A DNA stretch of 64,000 nt from Phaeosaccion multiseriatum (lineage: Eukaryota > Protista > Ochrophyta, other classes): the NCBI GenBank assembly GCA_965112735.1, contig OZ218953.1, forward strand, positions 2,046,001-2,110,000, given 5' to 3'. A program made the position numbers and the translations under genes. A model generated the notes under the pieces. The model saw nothing but the letters and a program-made list of their open reading frames with translations. It was not told the DNA's origin and did no database searches. Positions 7,024-33,900 of the stretch are shown here, piece by piece; within the stretch, counting starts at the first letter, position 1, and each line of letters starts with the position of its first letter.

Positions 7024-14457
<7,434 letters not shown>

Positions 14458-17002: not shown

Positions 17003-19144
17003 ATGCCGAAGAGGGGTGTCGTGGAAGATGTGCAGGGCAATGGGACGAGCGATGAGCGGGGCGACCAAGCGAAACGTTCTCGAGTGGGGGAGGAGGGTGG
17101 AGGTGCTGAAGCAGCAAATGGAAGTGCGTCGAAGCATATCTGTGCTTTACGAGCATGGATGGAGAAGGAAGGTGTGGCGGCATTCATAGTGCCCTCGGAT
17201 GACCCACATCTTAGTGAGTATGCGGCAGCTTGTTTCAACCGGAGGTGAGTGGTGTGAGGGGAGGGGGAGAGGGAGGAGGATGAAAATGATGAGGGTGACT
17301 TGCCTGCTAGAGGGGTGGCACCCGTGGATGATGGAATATGCTAGACCGCTCAAGCCTCCGGGGAGGGGGGTGGGAGGGTAGCGAGCGGGCGGGGCTGCTG
17401 CGTAGGGGGAATCGTAAAAAGTAAAAAGGGCATTCTGTAACATCCACACCCTTTGTGCTCATGAGCGGCGGCTTGGACCGGGGCGAGCGACGATTTTACA
17501 GTATAGAAAGAGTGTGGACATATGTAGCCGGTGGCGATGATCTGGTTCCCTGTCTTACCCTTCTGTGACCGTCCTTTGTCGTTCTGTCTTCCGCCCGCCC
17601 CACCCCACCCCACCTCCACCCCAGGGAGTTCATCTCAGGCTTCACGGGCTCTGCAGGCACGGTGGTCATCACCAAGTCCGCCGCGTTGTTGTGGACAGAC
17701 GGAAGATACTTCCTGCAGGCGGGGCAGGAGCTGCAGAGCGACTGGACGCTGATGAAGTCGGGCCAGAAGGGCACGCCGACAATCAAGGACTACCTCTGCA
17801 GCGAGCTGTCCGCAGGGGACGAGGTGGCGGTCGACCCCTTCGTGCTCAGCGCCACTTTCGCCACTCAGCTCAGGGACGGGCTGCGAGAGAAGGTAGGTTG
17901 TTCGCTGGGTCCGTCAGTCAGTCGGTCGGTCGGTCAGTCGGTCAGTCGGTCTACCATACTCCAGATATGCTTGGGAGATTGGCCCGAGTCTGTGAGGTCC
18001 AACCCGCCATCCCCCTCCACCCAACTCGCCATGCGTCTCCCCTCATTCATGCCGGCCTGCCTTGCCGTTGCTTTCAACGCCCTCGCCTTGCCGTCCGACC
18101 TCCTCCTCAGAGCATCAACATGAAGAAGTACGAGACGAATCCCCTGGACGCTGTGTGGGGAGAGGCCCGCCCCTCTGCCCCCCAGAGCCAGGTGCGCGTG
18201 CACCCTCTCCAGTTCGCTGGGCAGAGCGTGGCAGACAAGCTGAAGAGCCTCCGCGGCTCCATGGCGGAGGAGAAGGCGGAGGCCTTTGTGGTGTGCATGC
18301 TGGACGAGGTGGCGTATCTGCTCAACGTGAGGGGCAGTGACGTGGCACACAACCCAGTGACTGTGGCCTACGCGGTGGTGACGGAGGGAGAGGCCAACCT
18401 GTTCATTGACCAGGCCAAGGTGGGCGAGGAGGTGCGGGCGCACTTGAGTGAGCCTGGCGTGACGGTGGCTGACTACACGGAGGCGCTGCCGTACGTGAAG
18501 CGGCTCGTGAAGGAGGGTAAGAGCGTGTGGGTGGACCCTGCCCGAGTGAACTTCGCCTTCTACGACGCGGTGGTGGGAGGGGGGGGGGAGGGGGGGGTAA
18601 AGGGGGGCAAGGACGGTACCGCCGAAGCGAGTGCCGTGCAGAAGGTCAGCCCCATTACGCTGGCGAAGGGGGTGAAGAATGACACCGAGCTGAAGGGTAT
18701 GCGGAATATTCATATCAGGTACGGTGTGCACCAGCTTGAGAGTCATTTTGACTCGACCCCAAGGGCAGCAACTAGAATGGGGGGGAGCAAAAGACTGCCG
18801 AACCTCTGCGACGGGCAGCGCGAGCTGAATAGTCGGGGATGGGATGACTGCGCCCTTGGCGAGAAGGAGGGGGGGTGTGCGCCTGCTTGACTTGGCTCTC
18901 GAGTCGGAGTGGTAGGGTAGGGCAGCGTAGGGTAGGGTAGGGTAGGGTAGAGTAGGGTAGGATAGGTTTATCTCTTGCTCCCTTCCTTTCAATCTGCCTT
19001 CTCTCGTTGAGGCTCAGTGCCCTAGTCCAGTGGGGGAAAGACGGTGGCGAAGTGGCGCTCTCTCGCCTCCCCCCCTTTGCCTAACTGGTACTCTGCTTTC
19101 TGTCTGTCGTATGTGCCCCCTCTTCTTCTTCTTCTTCTTCTTCT

Positions 19145-19175
<31 letters not shown>

Positions 19176-19358
19176 GTCTTCTCTGTGGCGCAGAGACGGG
19201 ACGGCCGTTGTGCGATGCTTAGCGTGGCTCCAACGAGAGGTGGTTGATCGAGGTCAGTCTCACCACATCAGTCCATGTGTATGGGTGGGTGGGTGTGGGT
19301 GGGTGTGGGTGGGTGTGTGCGTGCGTGGTGTGTGTGTGTACGTGGGTGGTGTGTGTTG

Positions 19359-19397
<39 letters not shown>

Positions 19398-21671
19398 CGT
19401 GTGTGCGTTCGGGTGTGTGTGTGTGGCTGGGTGTGGGTATGCCTGTGTGCCTTTGTTTGGACGGACGTTGAGTGCCTAAGCACCATGTATGTATCCATGC
19501 TTGCATTGCGTGCTTCCGTTGCTCTCCTCCTCCACTCCCAGGCAAGAGCTACACGGAGGTGGAAGTGGACGACCACCTAAGAGAGTACAGGAAGGCAGAG
19601 GGCATGATGGAGGAGAGGTGAGGGGGGGGGCGAGAGAGAGAGACGGGGGTGGAAGGGACGGGGGAAGGCGGGACAAGAGTAGAACCAACAGCGCTGCTGC
19701 TTGGTCTCTTACACGGCATGTGCCCGGAGAGCCCGACTGACGCACGTCCAAATCCCTGCAACATCGCTCCTTTGTATATCATATTTTGTTCAACCCTCAG
19801 TTTCCCCACCATCGCGGGGGCTGGTGCCAACGGAGCCATTATTCACTACAGGGCCAAGCGAGAGACCGCGGCGACTGTGGACAAGTCGGTCATGTTTTTG
19901 CTGGACAGCGGCGGGCAGTACGAGGACGGGACGACCGACGTGACGAGGACCATGCACTTCGGCACTCCCACTGACTTCCAGAAGGAGGCGTACACACGGG
20001 TGCTGCAGGTAGGAGAGAGAGGGGAGGTAAAGAGAAGGGAGAGAGAGAGGGAGAGAGAGGGGGGGGGGGGGGGGAGAGGGAGGGGGGTTTGGCAGCGGCA
20101 GTGGGGGTGGGTATGCTGTGGCGCCAACTGAAGTGGCGGTCAGTGGGAGTCAGGGTGTTGCTTGCGCCCTTCAATGCCCTCCCTCGCTCTCTCTCGCCCC
20201 ACCTCCCTTCTTCTTGCCTTTCGACGTGTGCTATTTCCGCTCCCGTTCCCTTCCTTCCCTTACGCCCGCTATCTTTCGACAGAGAATACACATCGTTTTA
20301 CCCTGCATGCCTGACGCCTTTGTCGCCTCCGCCCCCACACACACTCACATGCACTGTCGCCTTCCGACCCCCTACCAACTCGATAACTCGCCAATTGCCT
20401 GCCGTTGTTGACCGACCAGGGCAACATTTGCCTTAGTACGGCAATCTTCCCCGAAGGCGTCCCCGGCTGCCAGGTTAGTATGTTGGTTCTTTGTGTTTTG
20501 GCTTTCTGGTTTCAGCGCCAGTTGTCAGCTGTAGCCCGCGCACGCACACACGCGGCGCACGCGCACATATACACACTACCCTACTAAGATGGTTGTCAGC
20601 GGCTCACTGGCCATTCTCTGCAGTAGTGCACTGGCGCTCTCGTCACTGACTTCATCTCCTGCCAGTCAACCTGACGCCGCGACGTCCTACCTCACTGTCT
20701 GCCTTTTGTGTATACATGTCTCTGTATGTGCCTGCCTGTCTGTCTGTCCGTCTGTCTTGTCTGTCCGCAGATCGATGCGTTTGCACGTAGAGCTCTTTGG
20801 TCCTCCGGCCTTGACTACACACACGGCACCGGTCACGGTGTGGGCGCTGCCCTCAACGTGCACGAAGGCCCACACTCCATCTCGGCTCGATTCGGAAACC
20901 TCTCACCTATGGAGAAGGGCATGATCGTCAGGTCAGAGTCGGCTCCTCCTCTTCTTCCTCCTCCTCTTCCTCCTCCTCCTCCCTCATCGTCCTCCTTTTT
21001 CTCCCCCCCCCCTCCCCCTCTTCCCGGGGAATGTCGGTACCGTGTTCACTGTTTACGCTATACCTCTCGGTGCACAAGTAGTTGTCGCCGTGCTGAGTAC
21101 GTCGATGGTTGACTTGCGTTTCGAAGATGCTGCAAGAAATGTGTCTTGCCCTCATGAATTGCCTCCACCCGCCATGTCTGCCTCTCTCTCGCTCCATGTC
21201 TGTCTGTCTTGTCTCCGTGGCTGTTTGTCTCTCTCTACCTCTCTCTCTTTTCTCTCTCTCTCTTCTCTCTCTCGCGTTCTCTCTCTCCGTCTGTCCCTCT
21301 CTCGATTCTTTCTTTTCTCTCCTTCTCTTCTCTTCTCTCTCTCGTTCGCTCGCTCTCTCCCTCTCAGCAACGAGCCTGGCTTCTACCAACCCGGCGAGTT
21401 TGGTATTCGCATCGAGAACCTCATGGAAATTGTCGACACAGGCATGACCAACAAGGTCCTAAACAAGTCCTTCTTCACCTTTGAGCAGCTCACCCTCATC
21501 CCCATTCAGCAGAGCCTCATCGACACCAGCCTCCTCACCACCGCTGAGATGGACTGGCTGGATGCCTACCACAGGACGGTGTGGGAAAAGATCAGTCCAC
21601 GTCTGAGCGGGGAAGAAGACAAGCTTGCGCTCCAGTGGCTGAAGGAGGCGACAGTCCCCATACCGCGGTGA
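17003..21671 (+). CDS. Xaa-Pro aminopeptidase (aminopeptidase P, M24B), copy A
   Basis: Creatinase-N motifs AFIVPSDDPHLSEY, FISGFTGSAGT and LWTDGRYFLQA. Catalytic motifs LLDSGGQYEDGTTDVTRT, HGTGHGVGAALNVHEGP and SNEPGFY..GEFGIRIEN. About 9 exons. Confidence 0.95.
17557..18695 (+). repeat. Left arm of a ~1.14 kb near-identical inverted repeat (partner 24615-25750)
   Basis: Exons 2-3 and the intervening intron of aminopeptidase A match the reverse complement of copy B, with only scattered mismatches by eye. Confidence 0.93.
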
Positions 21672-22258
21672 CCGCTCAAGCGGTAGGGGAAGCGCTGGAG
21701 GTGGGTTTGATTGGTAGAGAGCAAGAGATGGACCAGAGGGATTCTGGCCACTGTGTGTGGAACTGCACGCCTCCCCCTGGCATGCGGGCCGAGGGCGTCT
21801 GCTCTGCTCCGCTCTGTGTCGTTCTGCTTTGCTTTACGCTTACAAGTGTGTGCCTCTCTTCCACCCTCCTTGACGGCACTTCCTTGACGGACACACAAAG
21901 GCGTTTGCCGCCTAAGACAACCCCTGAGGTATCGCCCTCGGGTATGCGAAGGAATCTAGTACATACATACCCAAGAAGAAGAAAATCAAGCTTCAAGACC
22001 TTTCATTACCTAATAAAGTATGTACAGTACAAAAAAATTAAAAGAAATAATGGACAATGGCAGCGAGAAACAAGTACAGTACAAATTAAGAGACAAGGCG
22101 CGAGAAGAAAGGTGGAGAGTGCTTGTAATGGTGCGCGGGCCCAGGCCCTAAGAAAGTCAGCCCCAGCCCCTACCGCCCTCATCTCCCATCCATCTATTTA
22201 TCCAACCAAAAACACACAGCACACGACCACACCCAGCACACCGCCACCGCCGTCACAG

Positions 22259-22881
22259 CTACCGCTTCATGGGGCCTGTCGCCTCCTTCAGCCACTGGAG
22301 CGCAAGCTTGTCTTCTTCCCCGCCCAGACGTGGACTGATCTTTTCCCACACCGTCCTGTGGTAGGCATCCAGCCAGTCCATCTCAGCGGTGGTGAGGAGG
22401 CTGGTGTCGATGAGGCTCTGCTGAATGGGGATGAGGGTGAGGTCTTCAAAGGTGAAGAAGGACTTGTTCAGGACCTTGTTGGTCATGCCTGTGTCGACAA
22501 TTTCCAGGAGGTTCTCGATGCGAATACCAAACTCGCCGGGTTGGTAGAAGCCAGGCTCGTTGCTGAGAGGGAGAGAGAGAGAGAGAGCGAGAGACAGGGT
22601 GAGAGGAGAGAAAGAGAACATGGAGAAGGTGTGCAGGTGTGTGTGAGAGAGAGAGAGAAACCCGGGGTACACAAACCTGACGATCATGCCCTTCTCCATG
22701 GGTGAGAGGTTTCCGAATCGAGGAGAGATTGAGTGTGGGCCTTCGTGCACGTTGAGGGCAGCGCCCACCCCGTGACCGGTGCCATGACCGTAGTCGAGGC
22801 CAGCGGCCCAGAGAGCCCTACGCGCAAAGGCGTCGATCTGTGAACACAAAGACAGACAGACAGATAGGCAGACAGACAGGC

Positions 22882-22961
<80 letters not shown>

Positions 22962-24267
22962 GGACAGACAGACAGACAGGCAGACAGACACACGGACAGA
23001 CAGACAAATAAGACAGACAGAGAGAGCGACAGACAAGACAGACAGAGAGAGAGAGACAGACAAGACAGACAAACAAACAGACAGACGGACACACAGACAG
23101 GCCGGGCAGACAGATAAGACAGACAGAGAGAGAGAGAGACAGACAGACAGATACACAGACGGATAGATAGAGAGGAAGGATATGAGAGGAGAGAAAGGCA
23201 GACAGATAGAAAGAGGGCATTGATGGATCTCCGCAGAACCGTTACAGAAAGAGGAAGCAAGAAGCAAGACTGACCTGACAACCGGGAGTGCCGTCGGGGA
23301 ACACGGCCGTACTCAGGCCGATGTGGCCCTACCGGTAAGGCGAAGGACACAAGGAGGGGGGGGGGCAGGGAAGGAGGCAGAAGGGAGGTTAGGAGGGAGA
23401 GAGGGAGGGAGAGAGGGGGGGGGCACGAAGAGCACAACACCCTGACTACTCGCATTAAACACCAATTCACTTGGTGCCACAGCATGTGTCCGTCCTCTCT
23501 GCCATCCCTTCGGGCATTGAGCATAAAGCAGCACTGCCGCTGCAACTGCCGCGGCCACTGCCGCTGCCACACCCCTCCCTCTCTCTCCTACCTTCAGCAC
23601 CCGTGTGTAGGCCTCCTTCTGGAAGTCAGTGGGAGTGCCGAAGTGCATGGTCCTCGTCACGTCGGTAGTCCCGTCCTCGTACTGCCCACCGCTGTCCAGT
23701 AAGAACATGACCGAGTTATCCAGCGTCGCCGCGGTCTCCGGCTGGGCATCGTAATGAATAATGGCTCCATTGGCACCCGCACCCGCGATGGTGGGGAAAC
23801 TGGGGGGAGGGGGGGGTGCACAAAAATATAATAGAGTAAGGAGAGTTCTTGCACAGCATACGGACAGGGAGGTGCAAGAAATCAAGCAGGAGGGCTGCTG
23901 CTCTGCTCCTGTCCCACCCCCACCCCCCCCTTCCCTTCCACCTCCGCCTCTCTCTCGCTCCCCCCTCACCTCTCCTCCATCATGCCCTCTGCCTTCCTGT
24001 ACTCTCTCAGGTGAGCGTCCACCTCAACCTCCGTGTAGCTCTTGCCTGGGGAGTGGAGGAGGAGAGCAACGGAAGCACGCAATGCAAGCATTTATTGGCA
24101 GATGGTGGTTAGGTCCTCCACTCTCCTGCTTGGGCTCCATCTTTGCCTGACATGTCATTCCTCACCTTGCTCTCCGACATCCCGTTGCAGCCATGACAAA
24201 AATCGAGCCATGGCGGTACCATCCCTGTGGCAAGAGGGAAGAAGAGGCGAAAGAAGGCAACAAGAGA

Positions 24268-24330
<63 letters not shown>

Positions 24331-26643
24331 CGTAAGAAAGGTAAGCAAGGCAACGTACAAAAGATTGATCTTCCTTGCCACAGCCCCAATCCCAGTTCTA
24401 TCCCATAGCCTTGTCCTTCGCCGCGTGCGCCGTTCTCACCAAGAGAGCCCCCCCGAGCCTCAGGCCCTCGGTCACAACTCTACACTGCACGCATCGCCAA
24501 CGGTGCGTAAGTCTCTTCGATCGATATGAGGTGCCGCTCTCTTCCCTCCCTCTATCCCTCCCTCACAGATGGAGATTCAAAGCAACGCACCTGATGTGGA
24601 CCTCTCTCATGCTCTTCAGCTCGGTGTCATTCTTCACCCCCTTCGCCAGCGTAATGGGGCTGACCTTCTGTACGGCACTCGCTTCGGCGGTACCGTCCTT
24701 GCCCCCCTTCCCCTCCCCCTGCCCCCCCCCTCCCACCACCGCGTCGTAGAAGGCGAAGTTCACTCGGGCAGGGTCCACCCACACGCTCTTACCCTCCTTC
24801 ACGAGCCGCTTCACGTACGGCAGCGCCTCCGTGTAGTCAGCCACCGTCACGCCAGGCTCACTCAAGTGCGCCCGCACCTCCTCGCCCACCTTGGCCTGGT
24901 CAATGAACAGGTTGGCCTCTCCCTCCGTCACCACCGCGTAGGCCACAGTCACTGGGTTGTGTGCCACGTCACTGCCCCTCACGTTGAGCAGATACGCCAC
25001 CTCGTCCAGCATGCACACCACAAAGGCCTCCGCCTTCTCCTCCGCCATGGAGCCGCGGAGGCTCTTCAGCTTGTCTGCCACGCTCTGCCCAGCGAACTGG
25101 AGAGGGTGCACGCGCACCTGGCTCTGGGGGGCAGAGGGGCGGGCCTCTCCCCACACAGCGTCCAGGGGATTCGTCTCGTACTTCTTCATGTTGATGCTCT
25201 GAGGAGGAGGTCGGACGGCAAGGCGAGGGCGTTGAAAGCAACGGCAAGGCAGGCCGGCATGAATGAGGGGAGACGCATGGCGAGTTGGGTGGAGAGGGAT
25301 GGCGGGTTGGACCTCACAGACTCGGGCCAATGTCCCAAGCATATCTGGAGTATGGTAGACCGACTGACCGACTGACCGACCGACTGACTGACTGACGGAC
25401 CCAGCGAACAACCTACCTTCTCTCGCAGCCCGTCCCTGAGCTGAGTGGCGAAAGTGGCGCTGAGCACGAAGGGGTCGACCGCCACCTCGTCCCCTGCGGA
25501 CAGCTCGCTGCAGAGGTAGTCCTTGATTGTCGGCGTGCCCTTCTGGCCCGACTTCATCAGCGTCCAGTCGCTCTGCAGCTCCTGCCCCGCCTGCAGGAAG
25601 TACCTCCCGTCTGTCCACAACAACGCGGCGGACTTGGTGATGACCACCGTGCCTGCAGAGCCCGTGAAGCCTGAGATGAACTCCCTGGGGTGGAGGTGGG
25701 GTGGGGTGGGGCGGGCGGAAGACAGAACGACAAGGACGGTTACAGAAGGGTCAGAGGAAACACCTGATTCAACACACTCTGCCACACTCCTCCTACAAAC
25801 ATGCACACACAAATGTGCCAAATATAAAACGCGACAGAGGAGGCCATTGAAAAGGGCGAAGTGAGGACGGGAAGCTCACACGGCCCAAAGAGCAAACAGC
25901 ATCGTCCCTGCCAGGCTTTCCGCCCTCTCCTGTAGACTTGCCGGTCCGCCTTCCTTTTCCAGCCGAAACCCTCACCTTCGATTGTAGTGCGGCGCTGCGT
26001 ATTCGCTGAGATGTGGGTCATCCGAGGGGACAATGAAGGCGACGACACCTTCCTCCTCCATCCACGCTCGGAGGGCAGAAACAGACTCGGATATGCCGCT
26101 ACTGCTGCTGCTGCTGCTGCTACTGCTTACATCCTCCTCTGCGGTGAGTGTCGAGGGTACGCTGGATCCTGCCATCGCTTCGCTGGAGGCGTTGGGTACC
26201 GTGGCCGAGGCGCCTCCTCGAGAAGAGAAGGCTCGGTGGAAGGAGGGGGAGAAATTCCGCGGACGGCCGAAGGAGTCTAGTATAGGTCGAGAGGAAGATG
26301 CTGATAGGGATGATGAAGAGGAGGGGGAGGAGGGGGGCGGAGAAGATGCAGAGCAAGCCGCAAAGGCTGGCGTCGGCACCCGCGCATTCCTCGGCAGATG
26401 AGCTGTTGCTGCTGCGCTGGCGAGCCTCCTCGTCCCTCTCTGCCCCACTGCGCCGATCGAAGGCACCAGCCCATCTACGACCACCGCTTTCAAGCCGCAC
26501 ACTGCCCAAAGAGCCATGCAAGCGAGGACGGAAGGTCCTGTTGGGCCACCACCTCGGCCTTCGCTGCTGGTGCTACTGCTGGTCCCCTCCTTGCTGCTCC
26601 CACTAACACCTCTGCTGCTGCTTCGGCGGCGAGTGATTGCCAT
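22259..26643 (-). CDS. Xaa-Pro aminopeptidase (aminopeptidase P, M24B), copy B, with long N-terminal targeting extension
   Basis: Same motifs and intron positions as copy A. N-terminus has a hydrophobic segment (VLACMALWAVCGLKAVVVDG) and an S/R/A-rich transit-like region of ~150 aa before ALRAWMEEEGVVAFIVPSDDPH. Confidence 0.95.
24615..25750 (-). repeat. Right arm of the ~1.14 kb inverted repeat (partner 17557-18695)
   Basis: Reverse-complement match including the intron microsatellite gtcagtcagtcggtcggtc. Confidence 0.93.
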
Positions 26644-26844: not shown

Positions 26845-28239
26845 ATGCTTCCCATTTACGCGCAGCAAGTGAAGCATAAGCAGCAGCGTCGGAAGCGGAG
26901 CTTTTTAGGAGCAGGAGTGCGGAGGAGTAGTGGAAGCAGGGGCGGCAGTAACAGCTGCGGCCAGGGCTTGCTAAGCCGGCCTCCAATCCAGTGGCTTTCG
27001 TGCGGAGGGGTCACGCTATTTGTCTTAATAACCTTGCAGGTACGTGATGGCCGAGGGTGCCTGCAGTAGAAGCCGGAAGGGCTGAAACCAAGTCGATGAC
27101 CATGGTCCGCTGTGTGCCTCATCGGCCAGGCATCTCTGCTGGCCCTTCCCGGCTTTGTTTTGCCTTCCCGGCACCCAGCACGACTCCCCTGTCCCTATGC
27201 AATCTAACATCTCGAGGAGGAGTTAACGGAATGGAGTGGGTATTATTTTTACTCCTTAAAACCCCGCGTTGCGGAACTCTACTCTCTCTCTCGAAACCGC
27301 ACAGATCCGCCTTTTTTCGTCTCTCAGCCAATCTGAGGACGCCTCCGATAGCTTGCTATCCAACGTCAAGAAGGCAATAGAAGAGGCGGCGGCAGCTGCT
27401 GGTGGCCAGGGCATCACGTAAGTCTGCGACAGCAATGCCTCCTAGCCGGCCGTCTCTTCGGTTCAGCCTTCTCAATCCCCCTTGTTTCTCCTCTTTTCAT
27501 CCTGTCCCCTACATTGCATCCTCTCAGAAAGTTGTGGGGGCGGGTGGACGAGGGTGGGAAGCCTGTGACATGTGTGGACCCCATAACCTCAGTCAAGCGG
27601 TTGATACCGGGCGAGTGGATCAACGACGACTATTGCGACTGCTCCCTCGGGGAGGATGAGCCGCACACAGGAGGTAAGAGAGGGACGAGGCGGTCGAGGG
27701 AGCTTCCCAATGCGCTCATTTCTCGTTGTTGAGCCTCATGCATTCGAACAGAGCTCTTCCTGCCTTTGTCCCTCTCCCTCCTCCCTCTCTGGTCTCTCTT
27801 CCCTCTTGTCTAATGGTGTATCCATCCCCTGCTCACGTTGCAGCATGCAGTATAACGACTGTGGGTCAAAAGAAGTTTGCCTGCCGACAAGAGCGGCAGC
27901 TGATGGCGAAACAGCCTTTCGAGCGCGAGTTTGTGTTCGCCTCCCGCCTTGGCGACGGTGTATGCGACTGCTGCGACGGGTCTGACGAAGGTAAGCGCAG
28001 CCGTCTTTGCTTCATACTCGTAACTGTTCCGTCGGCCCCTCTCTGCTCTGGCCATTTAACTGATTGTGTGTCCGTACGCCCTGTCACCTAATACGCCCGC
28101 AAAAAACTTCAACAACGACGACGACTCGACGCACACAGCACCAGCTGTAGATTGCCCCGATGTCTGCCCGGCAACAGCAGCGACTGGCGGAGAGGCAGAT
28201 TCTGTCGTGGAAAAGGGCTCTAGGGAAGGAGGAGGCTGA
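26845..28239 (+). CDS. Short glucosidase II beta subunit (PRKCSH/G2B)-like protein with N-terminal signal anchor
   Basis: INDDYCDCSLGEDEPHTG|ACS...FAC...SRLGDGVCDCCDGSDE...DCPDVC is the G2B N-terminal LDLa-like domain. The junction between exon 1 (ends 27039) and the 27328 exon is unresolved. Confidence 0.75.
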
Positions 28240-30933: not shown

Positions 30934-33900
30934 ATGGATAGCTGGGAGACTCACGCAGGTGGGAAGGAGGCCGAAGAAAAGGCCGCCTCGGGTGCAGGGG
31001 GAGGGCAGGGAGGGGGAGGGGGCAGCTCCATGAATCCCAACGCGGCCTCCTTCTCCTTCAATCCCAACGCCTCGGGATGGACTCCTGGTGGAGGAGCGTC
31101 TTTCACGCCAGCGGCAGCAGCGGCAGCAGCTCCTCCTCCACCACCACCACCACCTGCTGCTGCTGCACAAGACGTGACGGAGAAGCTCGGGGGAGTGACC
31201 ATCAGCGTCGGCGCACCAAGCGCGGCAGCCGAGGGGGGAGGAGAGGACGAGGAGGCGGACGTGGTGGACGAAAGTGATCCATTATGGCAGGTATGACGCC
31301 GCTGGGGATGGTTTGCTAGATTAGCTTTGGAAGGGGGGGAGGAAAGAGATGCTGAGATTTTTCTTCTTGAGCGGTCTCTCCTTTCCTCCGCGCTGCCTTC
31401 CCCCCCCACCCTTTCTCAACCCCTGCTCGTGCTCTGAATACGCTGTGAACCTAAAGGTGACGCTGAGAATCGCGGGAGGGGACCGCAAGAAGGCCGTCAA
31501 GATGCTCGAGGACCCCGACTCCCTCATGTCACACCCCGAAGTGCTCAAGGTGAGCGCGTGCCTCACCAAGTCCATCTTATCACCAGCCCAGTTGGCTCTT
31601 ACTCTGTAGCGGTTCCTCCCGAGTCGCTCCCTCGATCCCTCGCCCACTCACTCGCTCGCTCGCTCGCTCACTCTTTCTGCTCCGTCTCTCTCTCTTCACT
31701 CTCAGGTGATTGAAGCGACCGAGGGAACAGTAGAAGACGATGCGGAGGACTATGGAGGAGAGAGTGGTGCCTCGGAGGCAGTGGCAGCAGCAGGAGCAGG
31801 CGCAGCAGCAGTAGCGGCAGCCGCTCCTGCTTCAGCGCCACCGGGCGCCAAGTCCACTGGAGACGATGAAGAGGAAGACGAGGAAGGGCAGGACGCAGAG
31901 GAAGAGGCAGAGGCAGGGGATGAGGACGAGAGAGAGCACTTGAACATTGTGTTCATCGGTCACGTTGACGCCGGAAAGTCAACACTGTCGGGGAACATTC
32001 TCTACCTTACTGACTTTGTGGATAAGCGGACCATTGAGCGCTACGAAAGGGAGGCCAAACAGAGGAATCGAGAGACTTGGTGAGTGTTTTGTATTTTTCT
32101 TAAGCCACCCTTCTCTTGCTGAGGGTACATCTACCCAGGGCTGAGCAGTCGAGCCTTTACCCAGTCAGCAATGGTTGCTCCCTGGGCCTCCATCTCTGTC
32201 ATTTGGAGGCACGATCGACCACTCTTCCAACCCGCTCTCTCTCTCTCACACACACATACACACCCTCACACTCGCACTCACGCACTCAAGCACTCAAGCT
32301 CACGCACGACGTGCACTCATTTCCGCCGCCGCCCGGTGTCTGATGTCTAATGTACCCCCCCGTGAAAGGTTCCTGGCCTTCATCATGGACACAAACGAGG
32401 AGGAGCGGGCCAAGGGAAAGACAGTGGAAGTAGGAAGGGCCCACTTCGAGACTGACACCAAGAGATACACCATTCTCGACGCGCCGGGCCATAGCGCGTA
32501 TGTACCCAACATGATCCAGGGAGCGGCCCAAGCAGACGTGGGTATCCTTGTCATCAGCGCGAGGAAGGGCGAGTTCGAGACGGGCTTTGAGAAGGGAGGA
32601 CAGACCAGGGAGCACGCTCTACTGGCCAAGACGCTGGGGGTGCGCTATTTGGTTGTGGTCATCAACAAGATGGACGACCCTACTGTAGAGTGGGCTAAGA
32701 CCCGCTTCGACGAGTGTGTCTCCAAGCTCAAGCCCTTCCTTAGGTCCTGTGGGTACGCGGTGAAGAAGGATGTGACCTTCATTCCCATCTCGGGTCTGGC
32801 CGGGAGCAACATTAAGGTGCCAGTGACCAAGGATGTGTGCCCGTGGTGGAGCGAGAGTGTGGCAGCTGGGGAGAACAACACCACCTCGGCCACGCTGCTG
32901 AAGCTCATGGACGACCTTAGTATGGACAACCGAGACTCCAGGTGGGTTCGCGCGAAGGGACGAGAGAGTGCCCCTTCTCTCTAGGATCGAAAGAGACCCG
33001 ACGCATGGGGGGGGGCGCACATTAAAACACGCCTGTGTGTCCTCCTCTCATGTGTATGGACCACACTAAGCTGCCTCCGCGAGTCCTGTCACCCCCGACG
33101 CCCTCCTTTGCTCTTACTTTTGTGTCTTCCCATGCCCCGCCCTCTGTCCTCTGCCCCTTGCCACCCCCGCCTTTGTAGCGCAAGTTTGCGTGTGCCTGTG
33201 CTGGACCGTTACACAGACCGCGGAACCATTGCGCTGGGCAAGGTGGAGCGAGGCACACTGAGGACGGGGAGCTCTGTTGTGGTCATGCCCACCCGAACGG
33301 AGGCTAAGGTAGGTGAATGGGGAATGGGCGGCGGGGGCAAGCGTGGGTGGGGCGATTGGTGGATGGGTGGGTGGGTGGGTGGTTGAGTGGATGAGTGAGT
33401 GGGTGGGTGGATGGGTGAGTGAGTGGGTGGGTGGAGTAGAGGCACTTGAGGCGTCTAGGGGGGCGGGGCGGCGGGGAATGTGTGTGACTGTGTGCTCATC
33501 GATAGAATGACATAAAGCGTGTGGAGGGCCATTCATTTGCGTACAGCAGATAGTGATGGCACAGCCGGAGAGGGGAGGGGAGGCAGCAGGCAAGATAGAG
33601 GCAGGCAGGCTCCATCGTGGGGCAGAGATCGGGGTCCGTGTCGATGAAGGATGGATGTGGGGGGGGGAGCAGGCACCACCCGGCGGGGCAAAAGTCAAAA
33701 ACTCAAAACGCTCGTCTGATCGCACAATCCTGTGTTTGTTGGTCGCGTGTGTGTATGAAAATCATCAATCAATCAATGACTCAGGTTGAGGCCATCTACA
33801 TTAACGACGTGAAGGTCAAGACCGCAAAGACCGGGGAGAATGTCAGCGTCAAGCTGAACATTCCTGACTCGGATGTTGTCAAGGGATTCGTTATCTGCGA

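Follow-up and report, generated by a model that had tools for sequence, protein, structure and literature searches.

Bacterial shufflons and the Hin/Gin/Cin invertases depend on a dedicated site-specific recombinase and short crossover sites, and the DNA inversion swaps C-terminal coding segments in frame. In the eukaryote Ogataea polymorpha, a nuclear inversion between inverted repeats also has a functional outcome, the switching of the mating type; this inversion is induced by starvation, follows a defined pathway and changes expression via centromere proximity (PMC5720833). On chromosome XIV of Saccharomyces, a flip/flop segment is bounded by the homogenised inverted paralogues YNL018C and YNL034W (Salzberg et al. 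2022, PMC9731477). The 4-kb repeats of this system comprise whole genes, the flipped segment of 24 kb carries 15 other genes, and both orientations are documented. In human sex-chromosome palindromes (P6, PMC3723533; X palindromes, PMC8981503), inverted arms of tens to hundreds of kb, which are more than 99.9% identical throughout, undergo intrachromosomal conversion with kilobase tracts and GC bias. Inversion accompanies arm conversion only rarely in these palindromes; for P6, 3 inversions compared with 146 conversions were reported (Hallast et al. 2013, PMC3723533).

A tail-to-tail pair of aminopeptidase P genes (A and B) of the alga Phaeosaccion multiseriatum can be compared with each of these systems. 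As on Saccharomyces chromosome XIV, the inverted repeat consists of paralogous genes, whose near-identity apparently goes back to recurrent homogenisation and which form a substrate for ordinary homologous recombination without a dedicated recombinase; in Phaeosaccion, however, the main tract is located inside both genes, a flip would give chimeric genes, and one orientation has been seen. With the human palindromes, the locus appears to share intrachromosomal conversion between inverted arms, kilobase tracts and GC bias, but the pair is old and mostly diverged and is patched by short tracts. The geometry of the inverted repeats resembles that of Ogataea, whereas the locus shows no sign of regulation or inversion. 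The in-frame swap brought about by shufflons and invertases is the effect that was imagined for this locus in a preliminary description; unlike those systems, the locus has neither a dedicated recombinase among ten flanking open reading frames (ORFs) nor short crossover sites.

Two inverted genes for aminopeptidase P

Both genes are located in a window of 64,000 nt (contig OZ218953.1 of assembly GCA_965112735.1), whose positions are used as coordinates (Table 1). They are intact, consist of nine exons each and have canonical GT-AG junctions, and the coding sequence of gene A, 1980 nt in total, is in phase. The lengths and phases of exons 2 to 9 are identical in A and B. Convergent paralogues at a distance of about 590 bp had been described before, which agrees with the 587 nt between the two stop codons.

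Table 1. Features of the aminopeptidase P locus (positions in the 64,000-nt window; T1 to T3 are the tracts shared by the two genes)
Feature	Position	Partner	Strand	Basis
Gene A, aminopeptidase P (M24B), short N-terminus, ~659 aa	17003-21671		+	Pfam per exon, tblastn with algal homologues
Gene A, nine exons	17003-17244, 17625-17892, 18111-18718, 19194-19252, 19542-19617, 19801-20008, 20420-20473, 20771-20931, 21368-21671		+	GT-AG junctions
Gene B, aminopeptidase P (M24B), leader ~190 aa, protein ~801 aa	22259-26643		-	Pfam per exon, tblastn
Gene B, nine exons	26643-25976, 25684-25417, 25198-24591, 24224-24166, 24045-23970, 23799-23592, 23328-23275, 22837-22677, 22562-22259		-	GT-AG junctions
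Spacer between the stop codons of A and B, 587 nt, not palindromic	21672-22258		.	Alignment and exon models
T1, left arm: end of intron 1, exon 2, intron 2, most of exon 3	17553-18701	25755-24608	+	blastn, 98.7% over 1149 nt
T1, right arm, in gene B	24608-25755		-	blastn and inverted-repeat search
(GTCR)n microsatellite in intron 2, equal length in both copies, one substitution	~17909-17951	~25358-25400	+	Difference list
Difference-free stretch of 573 nt within T1	18015-18587	24722-25294	+	Difference list
T2, older tract: exon 5 and ~45 nt of intron on either side	19497-19664	24091-23926	+	blastn, 92.9% over 169 nt
T3, recent tract in the last exon	21353-21654	22577-22276	+	Difference list (6 differences in 302 nt), pS 0.03
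Core between the T1 arms, 5.9 kb: exons 4-9 of A and B and the spacer	18702-24607		.	Geometry

Domain and homology searches were carried out exon by exon, without a spliced protein, and synonymous counts were pooled across exons by summing. In both genes, the Pfam domains Creatinase_N, Creatinase_N_2, Peptidase_M24 and Peptidase_M24_C follow each other in this order, with scores above the cut-offs (170 bits for Creatinase_N_2). The metal ligands of XPNPEP1 are Asp415, Asp426, His489, Glu523 and Glu537; the alignment of gene A to 3CTZ revealed D, D, H, E and E at these five positions, and the aligned exons of gene B encode identical residues. Domain order and metal ligands are like those of the three-domain Xaa-Pro aminopeptidase 1 (human XPNPEP1, PDB 3CTZ; C. 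elegans APP-1, 4S2R; Plasmodium APP, 5JQK), from which copy B differs by its additional long leader. As judged from these features, A and B are three-domain aminopeptidases P of the XPNPEP1 type (MEROPS M24B), for which Xaa-Pro aminopeptidase activity is predicted. Their best database matches, from the brown algae Sphacelaria and Laminaria, reach no more than about 52% identity in exon 3; the word-based search of proteins that identified them returned no protein from the Phaeosaccion genome itself and no close relative, and a metagenome scan with exon 3 yielded bacterial contigs only, with 26-39% identity.

The N-termini of A and B had been called unrelated, with a short one in A and a long one in B. 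Indeed, about 47 residues precede the conserved part in A and about 190 in B, and the two leaders are unrelated. The B leader contains 27% serine and few acidic residues and carries a net charge of +8; a hydrophobic segment is located around residue 42. Its designation as organellar-type reflects a compositional impression; the leader is possibly a candidate for organelle targeting, and the two copies are presumably targeted differently. The T1 arms occur exactly twice in the whole 67-Mb genome, which contains no Creatinase_N_2 genes other than A and B; a third genomic copy as donor could therefore be ruled out.

The mosaic of near-identical and diverged segments

The main tract, T1, begins in intron 1, of which it includes 72 nt, continues through exon 2 and all 218 nt of intron 2, and breaks off in exon 3, 17 nt short of the donor of this exon. 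In the blastn alignment, the two arms differ by 14 mismatches and 1 gap, and an inverted-repeat search located them at 17576-18726 and 24583-25733 (1151 nt, 98% complementary). The near-identical blocks reported in the preliminary description at 17557-18695 and 24615-25750 are thus real and close to these positions, and they were correctly said to include a whole intron together with its microsatellite: intron 2 has the same length in A and B and shows 3 differences per 218 nt. An Rfam scan of intron 2 identified no family above threshold (the top match, on the microsatellite, reached 29.5 bits compared with a cut-off of 90), and its fold is nothing unusual (z-score +0.78), so that constraint by an intronic RNA does not explain the identity and was rejected as its cause. 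The edges of T1 ignore the exon borders, the left one lying inside intron 1 and the right one ahead of the exon 3 donor. The right edge is sharp, with 9 differences within the final 23 nt of exon 3, just past the tract. Within T1, the differences cluster at the edges around the perfect core of 573 nt, which indicates recurrent events. If about 10 differences were spaced uniformly over about 1120 nt, a gap of this size would occur with a probability of about 0.008; the perfect stretch is probably a nested, younger conversion.

Smaller homogenised patches had been proposed at about 19497-19640/23950-24090 and in the last exon; both were recovered and correspond to T2 and T3. The seven intron pairs other than intron 2 differ in length and are unalignable, with 30-48% identity under forced global alignment, as had been noted for most of the introns.

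The synonymous sites form a mosaic as well. The Nei-Gojobori pS values of exons 1 to 9 are 0.75, 0.03, 0.05, 0.89, 0.29, 0.24, 0.43, 0.32 and 0.03; synonymous sites are saturated in exons 1 and 4, whereas values are low in exons 2, 3 and 9 and intermediate in exons 5 to 8. The values of exons 6 and 8 could in part be due to codon bias (GC3 0.64-0.83) instead of old conversion. Third codon positions differ at 9 of 290 sites within the tract and at 71 of 312 outside (Fisher p = 1e-13), and in the alignment of the concatenated coding sequences, A and B are identical over as many as 660 consecutive nt, compared with a permutation maximum of 190 nt (0/20000); chance is thus far from explaining the pattern. 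GC3 is higher where exons are homogenised (Spearman rho = -0.84, p = 0.005, n = 9 short exons), a correlation that codon-usage constraint could also explain. It suggests that the conversion is apparently GC-biased, and the trend agrees with published work on palindromes, in which conversion is GC-biased (PMC3723533, PMC8981503).

Probable gene conversion and alternative explanations

The locus very probably goes back to an old inverted duplication, in which interlocus gene conversion, apparently with a GC bias, has homogenised patches time and again. Long ago, a gene for a three-domain aminopeptidase P would have been duplicated tail-to-tail, one duplicate having a short N-terminus and the other a long leader, which might target an organelle. 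During homologous-recombination repair between the inverted copies on the same chromosome, stretches would have been copied from gene to gene repeatedly, presumably without crossover. Recent events would have produced the 1.15-kb tract from the end of intron 1 to exon 3, with its still younger 573-nt core, and the last-exon tract, which measures about 0.3 kb. Patches near exons 5 to 8 would be older, and the saturated exons 1 and 4 as well as the introns would have been left untouched. Recent recombination or gene conversion between the arms had already been assumed in the preliminary description, and the data support it: the near-identity extends over intron and microsatellite sequence as well as synonymous sites, the edges are sharp and the background is saturated. 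Identity at neutral sites (introns and synonymous sites) significantly exceeds that of the paralogue background, and the boundaries are discrete and independent of exon borders.

A crossover within the T1 arms would flip the core between them, of which one orientation is known from a single assembly. Since intron positions and phases are shared, such a crossover would keep A and B in frame, and the corresponding statement made earlier holds for exons 2 to 9, whose lengths and phases are the same. It has to be considered that the T1 arms also allow occasional crossover by non-allelic homologous recombination; strains or cells would then differ in the orientation of the core, each leader would be re-paired with the other catalytic half, and the result would be a passive polymorphism comparable to that of Saccharomyces chromosome XIV. 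This is unlikely, although the core is flanked by homogenised inverted repeats, whose 1.15 kb are 99% homologous and include a perfect core of 573 nt, and both products would be in frame because of the identical intron positions and phases. The swappable halves, which had been described as two diverged catalytic halves, are actually identical at 254 of 280 positions (91%) and both retain the five metal ligands; an inversion would therefore probably be nearly neutral. Moreover, there is a precedent for recurrently homogenised inverted paralogues that lead to a long-lived inversion polymorphism (PMC9731477). Against this, a single orientation is seen in the one assembly, crossover resolution is rare where it was measured, as in human palindrome P6 (PMC3723533), and the yeast flip/flop is reportedly stable over laboratory timescales (PMC9731477). 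When 14 database homologues were scored against A and B, with each unconverted exon taken separately, all of them gave near-equal scores, and no footprint of a past A/B swap is visible among them. That some members of the population, or some somatic cells, in fact carry a flipped core, and that the alga has both pairings of the leaders (cytosolic-type and organelle-type) with the two catalytic halves, is quite improbable; if true, it would be a natural flip/flop within a coding gene pair, kept possible through recurrent conversion of the arms.

It is very unlikely that an assembly or polishing artefact made moderately similar paralogous segments appear near-identical. Paralogues can be cross-corrected by short-read polishing; however, an unalignable intron cannot be polished to 98.6% identity, the arms retain their 14 mismatches and one indel as well as sharp edges against saturated flanks, and the same pattern is found in two more tracts of different ages. 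Furthermore, the assembly comprises 22 contigs, the locus lies 2 Mb inside one of them, and the 9.6 kb of the locus fit into single long reads.

In the preliminary description, the core was regarded as a possible invertible cassette or shufflon-like 2x2 switch. A programmed, regulated inversion, which sets the catalytic half that reaches a given compartment, is extremely improbable. Only the geometry speaks for it, together with mating-type switching in Ogataea polymorpha as a eukaryotic precedent for regulated inversion between inverted repeats (PMC5720833). However, when ten ORFs of 72-273 aa from the flanks, all within about 6 kb, were scanned against Pfam, no recombinase or transposase domain was detected; the only matches were PRKCSH-like, GTP_EFTU (a GTPase) and a weak Glyoxalase. 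The arms show the plain homology of coding and intron sequence, have accumulated mismatches and are not specific sites, and there would be little to switch, because the catalytic halves are near-equivalent. Purifying selection alone, acting for instance on a functional RNA or splicing element in the intron, has next to no probability as the force that preserved exons 2 and 3 and intron 2: these exons encode conserved domains, but the near-identity extends to synonymous sites, the microsatellite and 72 nt of intron 1, and equally conserved protein segments (e.g., exon 1c) have saturated synonymous sites.

Implications for the gene pair and its annotation

The Phaeosaccion locus is a new instance of a known and ordinary process, by which duplicated genes are kept alike by conversion, and no new mechanism. 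For a stramenopile alga that has been little studied, it provides a clean and well-delimited mosaic of interlocus conversion in a pair of inverted paralogues; the tracts represent at least three different ages, and GC bias is hinted at. The locus also marks a place at which a small inversion polymorphism that keeps the frame could occur. The practical relevance concerns annotation and phylogeny, since a paralogue tree built on exons 2, 3 and 9 would date the duplication falsely young.

The convergent aminopeptidase P genes

The aminopeptidase P genes A and B lie tail-to-tail and are the only Creatinase_N_2 genes in the genome. The Pfam domains Creatinase_N, Creatinase_N_2, Peptidase_M24 and Peptidase_M24_C were found exon by exon on both strands; all searches were made per exon, with no spliced protein. 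Nine-exon models were built from tblastn of algal homologues and from junction sequences, and each gene has eight introns, all GT-AG and at homologous positions. Exons 2-9 of A and B agree in length and phase, and the difference in summed exon length (1980 nt in A, 2406 nt in B) sits in exon 1. The preliminary description, which had given A a short and B a long N-terminus and placed the genes about 590 bp apart, is borne out: around 47 residues precede the conserved part in A and around 190 in B, and 587 nt separate the two stop codons. The B extension is rich in Ser, Ala, Arg and Pro, poor in acidic residues, and carries a net charge of +8; a hydrophobic segment lies near residue 42. This composition is compatible with a candidate organellar leader.

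The closest solved structures are C. elegans APP-1, human XPNPEP1 and Plasmodium APP. In the alignment to 3CTZ, Asp, Asp, His, Glu and Glu occupy positions 415, 426, 489, 523 and 537, with the same residues in A and B; we take Asp415, Asp426, His489, Glu523 and Glu537 of XPNPEP1 to be the metal ligands. The best protein matches are from brown algae, in agreement with a stramenopile alga as the source; identity to them is about 52% over exon 3 and reaches 72-76% over the catalytic exons. At the N-terminus of the Laminaria digitata homologue, some 100 residues ahead of the conserved domain, a hydrophobic signal-like segment precedes an 'SAF' motif. This homologue is a brown-algal aminopeptidase P with a plastid-type bipartite leader; targeted forms of the enzyme therefore exist in the wider lineage.

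The last exons of A and B form a 348-nt inverted repeat of 94% identity with arms 591 nt apart, and the predicted fold of this region has an MFE of -900 kcal/mol. A read-through or convergent transcript would form a hairpin of about 350 bp, a possible source of double-stranded RNA. Elsewhere in the window, a tetranucleotide microsatellite explains a local AT skew of 0.865 and stop-free ORFs in several frames.

Coordinates of the features in the window
Feature	Position	Strand	Remarks
Gene A	17003-21671	+	
Gene B	26643-22259	-	
Main tract, arm in A	17553-18701		
Main tract, arm in B	25755-24608		
Core between the arms	18702-24607		exons 4-9 of both genes and spacer
Difference-free stretch	18015-18587		573 nt
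Cluster of differences	18588-18599 / 24710-24721		four within 12 nt
Last-exon inverted repeat	21322-21669 and 22261-22608		
Folded region	21300-22630		
Microsatellite	11913-13633		1.7 kb, (ACAG) x 430, 99% matches
Glucosidase II beta subunit-like (PRKCSH-like) exons	27514-28091	+	divergent from B
ORF with EF-Tu-type GTP-binding domain	32175-32984	+	E = 8e-37

Homogenised blocks in an old duplication

The two arms form an inverted repeat of 1149 nt with 98.7% identity (14 mismatches and one 1-nt gap; repeat search and blastn). Repeats of at least 200 nt in the 64-kb window comprise these arms and two shorter inverted blocks from the same gene pair, and none else. Across the whole 67.1-Mb, 22-contig assembly, in which the window spans positions 2,046,001-2,110,000 of one contig, the arm sequence occurs at these two places only, the remaining matches all falling on a (GTCR)n microsatellite. 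Sliding-window identity, a check proposed earlier, is 95-100% per 100 nt from about 17564 to 18663 and falls abruptly to 30-60% on either side (global arm alignment). Both edges are discrete: the left one lies inside intron 1, 72 nt upstream of the exon 2 acceptor, and the right one inside exon 3, 17 nt before its donor, with 9 differences already in the final 23 nt of that exon. Intron 2 has 218 nt in both genes and just 3 differences, one of them within its microsatellite, whose length is unchanged. The seven remaining intron pairs are unequal in length (e.g., 380 vs 291 and 436 vs 114 nt) and unalignable.

Within the tract, differences crowd toward the edges. The longest difference-free stretch is unlikely under even spacing (p ~0.008 for about 10 differences in about 1120 nt, by our own calculation), and a younger event is therefore probably nested inside an older one. 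The 12-nt cluster of differences falls where exon 3 has a low-complexity insert rich in Gly (GGEGGVKGG vs GGQGEGKGG); it stems from a complex mutation or else marks where the nested tract ends. A second patch covers exon 5 together with some 45 nt of each flanking intron (92.9% identity, blastn), and a third covers the last exon (6 differences in 302 nt).

Exon length and synonymous divergence between A and B (pS, Nei-Gojobori proportion of synonymous difference)
Exon	Length (nt), A and B	pS
1 (conserved part)		0.75
2	268	0.03
3	608	0.05
4	59	0.89
5	76	0.29
6	208	0.24
7	54	0.43
8	161	0.32
9	304	0.03

Since the untouched exons 1 and 4 are saturated, the duplication is old, and exons 2, 3 and 9 have been overwritten recently. 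Exons of intermediate pS may be older conversions, which in the case of exon 5 is supported by its similar intron flanks; codon bias could contribute in exons 6 and 8. Third-position differences number 9/290 in exons 2-3 vs 71/312 elsewhere (Fisher p = 1e-13), and the observed identical coding run of 660 nt was reached in 0 of 20000 permutations (permutation maximum 190). More homogenised exons have higher GC3 (rho = -0.84, p = 0.005), a trend which, in a small sample of nine exons, is in line with the GC bias of conversion known from palindromes (PMC3723533, PMC8981503). The preliminary description had already noted the near-identical block with its whole intron and microsatellite, the smaller patches, the mostly unalignable introns and the age of the duplication, and each of these observations stands.

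Conversion, inversion and other readings

The best explanation, and a highly probable one, is that old inverted paralogues have undergone interlocus gene conversion, recurrently and possibly with a GC bias; intronic and synonymous near-identity, sharp edges and a pS mosaic with saturated exons all favour this part of the earlier proposal. The other part, a shufflon-like switch of diverged catalytic halves, fares less well. Its geometry is sound: wherever in the arms a crossover took place, the core would be inverted and exons 1-3 of A joined to exons 4-9 of B, and vice versa, in frame. The exchangeable halves are in fact 254/280 identical with all ligands present, and domains I-II are virtually identical, so that a flip would come down to a leader exchange between two near-equivalent enzymes. 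A Pfam scan of ten flanking ORFs of 72-273 aa, within about 6 kb, found no recombinase or transposase domain. The neighbours are the GTPase and the glucosidase II beta-like gene, whose Pfam scores lie below the gathering score because exon pieces alone were scanned.

In human palindrome P6, 146 conversions were counted vs 3 inversions (PMC3723533). The Saccharomyces flip/flop region lies between inverted paralogues that have been homogenised repeatedly, and it is polymorphic on an evolutionary timescale and stable in the laboratory (PMC9731477). In systems of this kind that have been measured, conversion far exceeds crossover. Together with the absence of recombinase domains from the scanned ORFs and the near-equivalent halves, this lowers inversion from a switch to a possible by-product. 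A passive inversion polymorphism of the core is improbable. None of the 14 homologues compared carries the footprint of a past swap (A-like in exon 1, B-like in exons 4-8), all being equidistant from A and B. The protein database searched contained no close relative, and a metagenome scan gave just distant bacterial genes. A programmed switch is far less credible still. Ogataea mating-type switching uses regulated flipping via inverted repeats (PMC5720833), whereas nothing at the A/B locus points to regulation.

An assembly or polishing artefact that made the arms look alike is unlikely, since differences persist between them, their borders are sharp against saturated flanks, two further tracts of other ages behave alike, and the 9.6-kb locus lies deep within a multi-megabase contig. 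Constraint on intronic RNA as the cause of the similarity of intron 2 is not supported, as its Rfam matches are far below threshold and all on the microsatellite, and its fold is no better than that of shuffles (z = +0.78). On the preferred reading of recurrent conversion, the locus adds one more case to a process already known.
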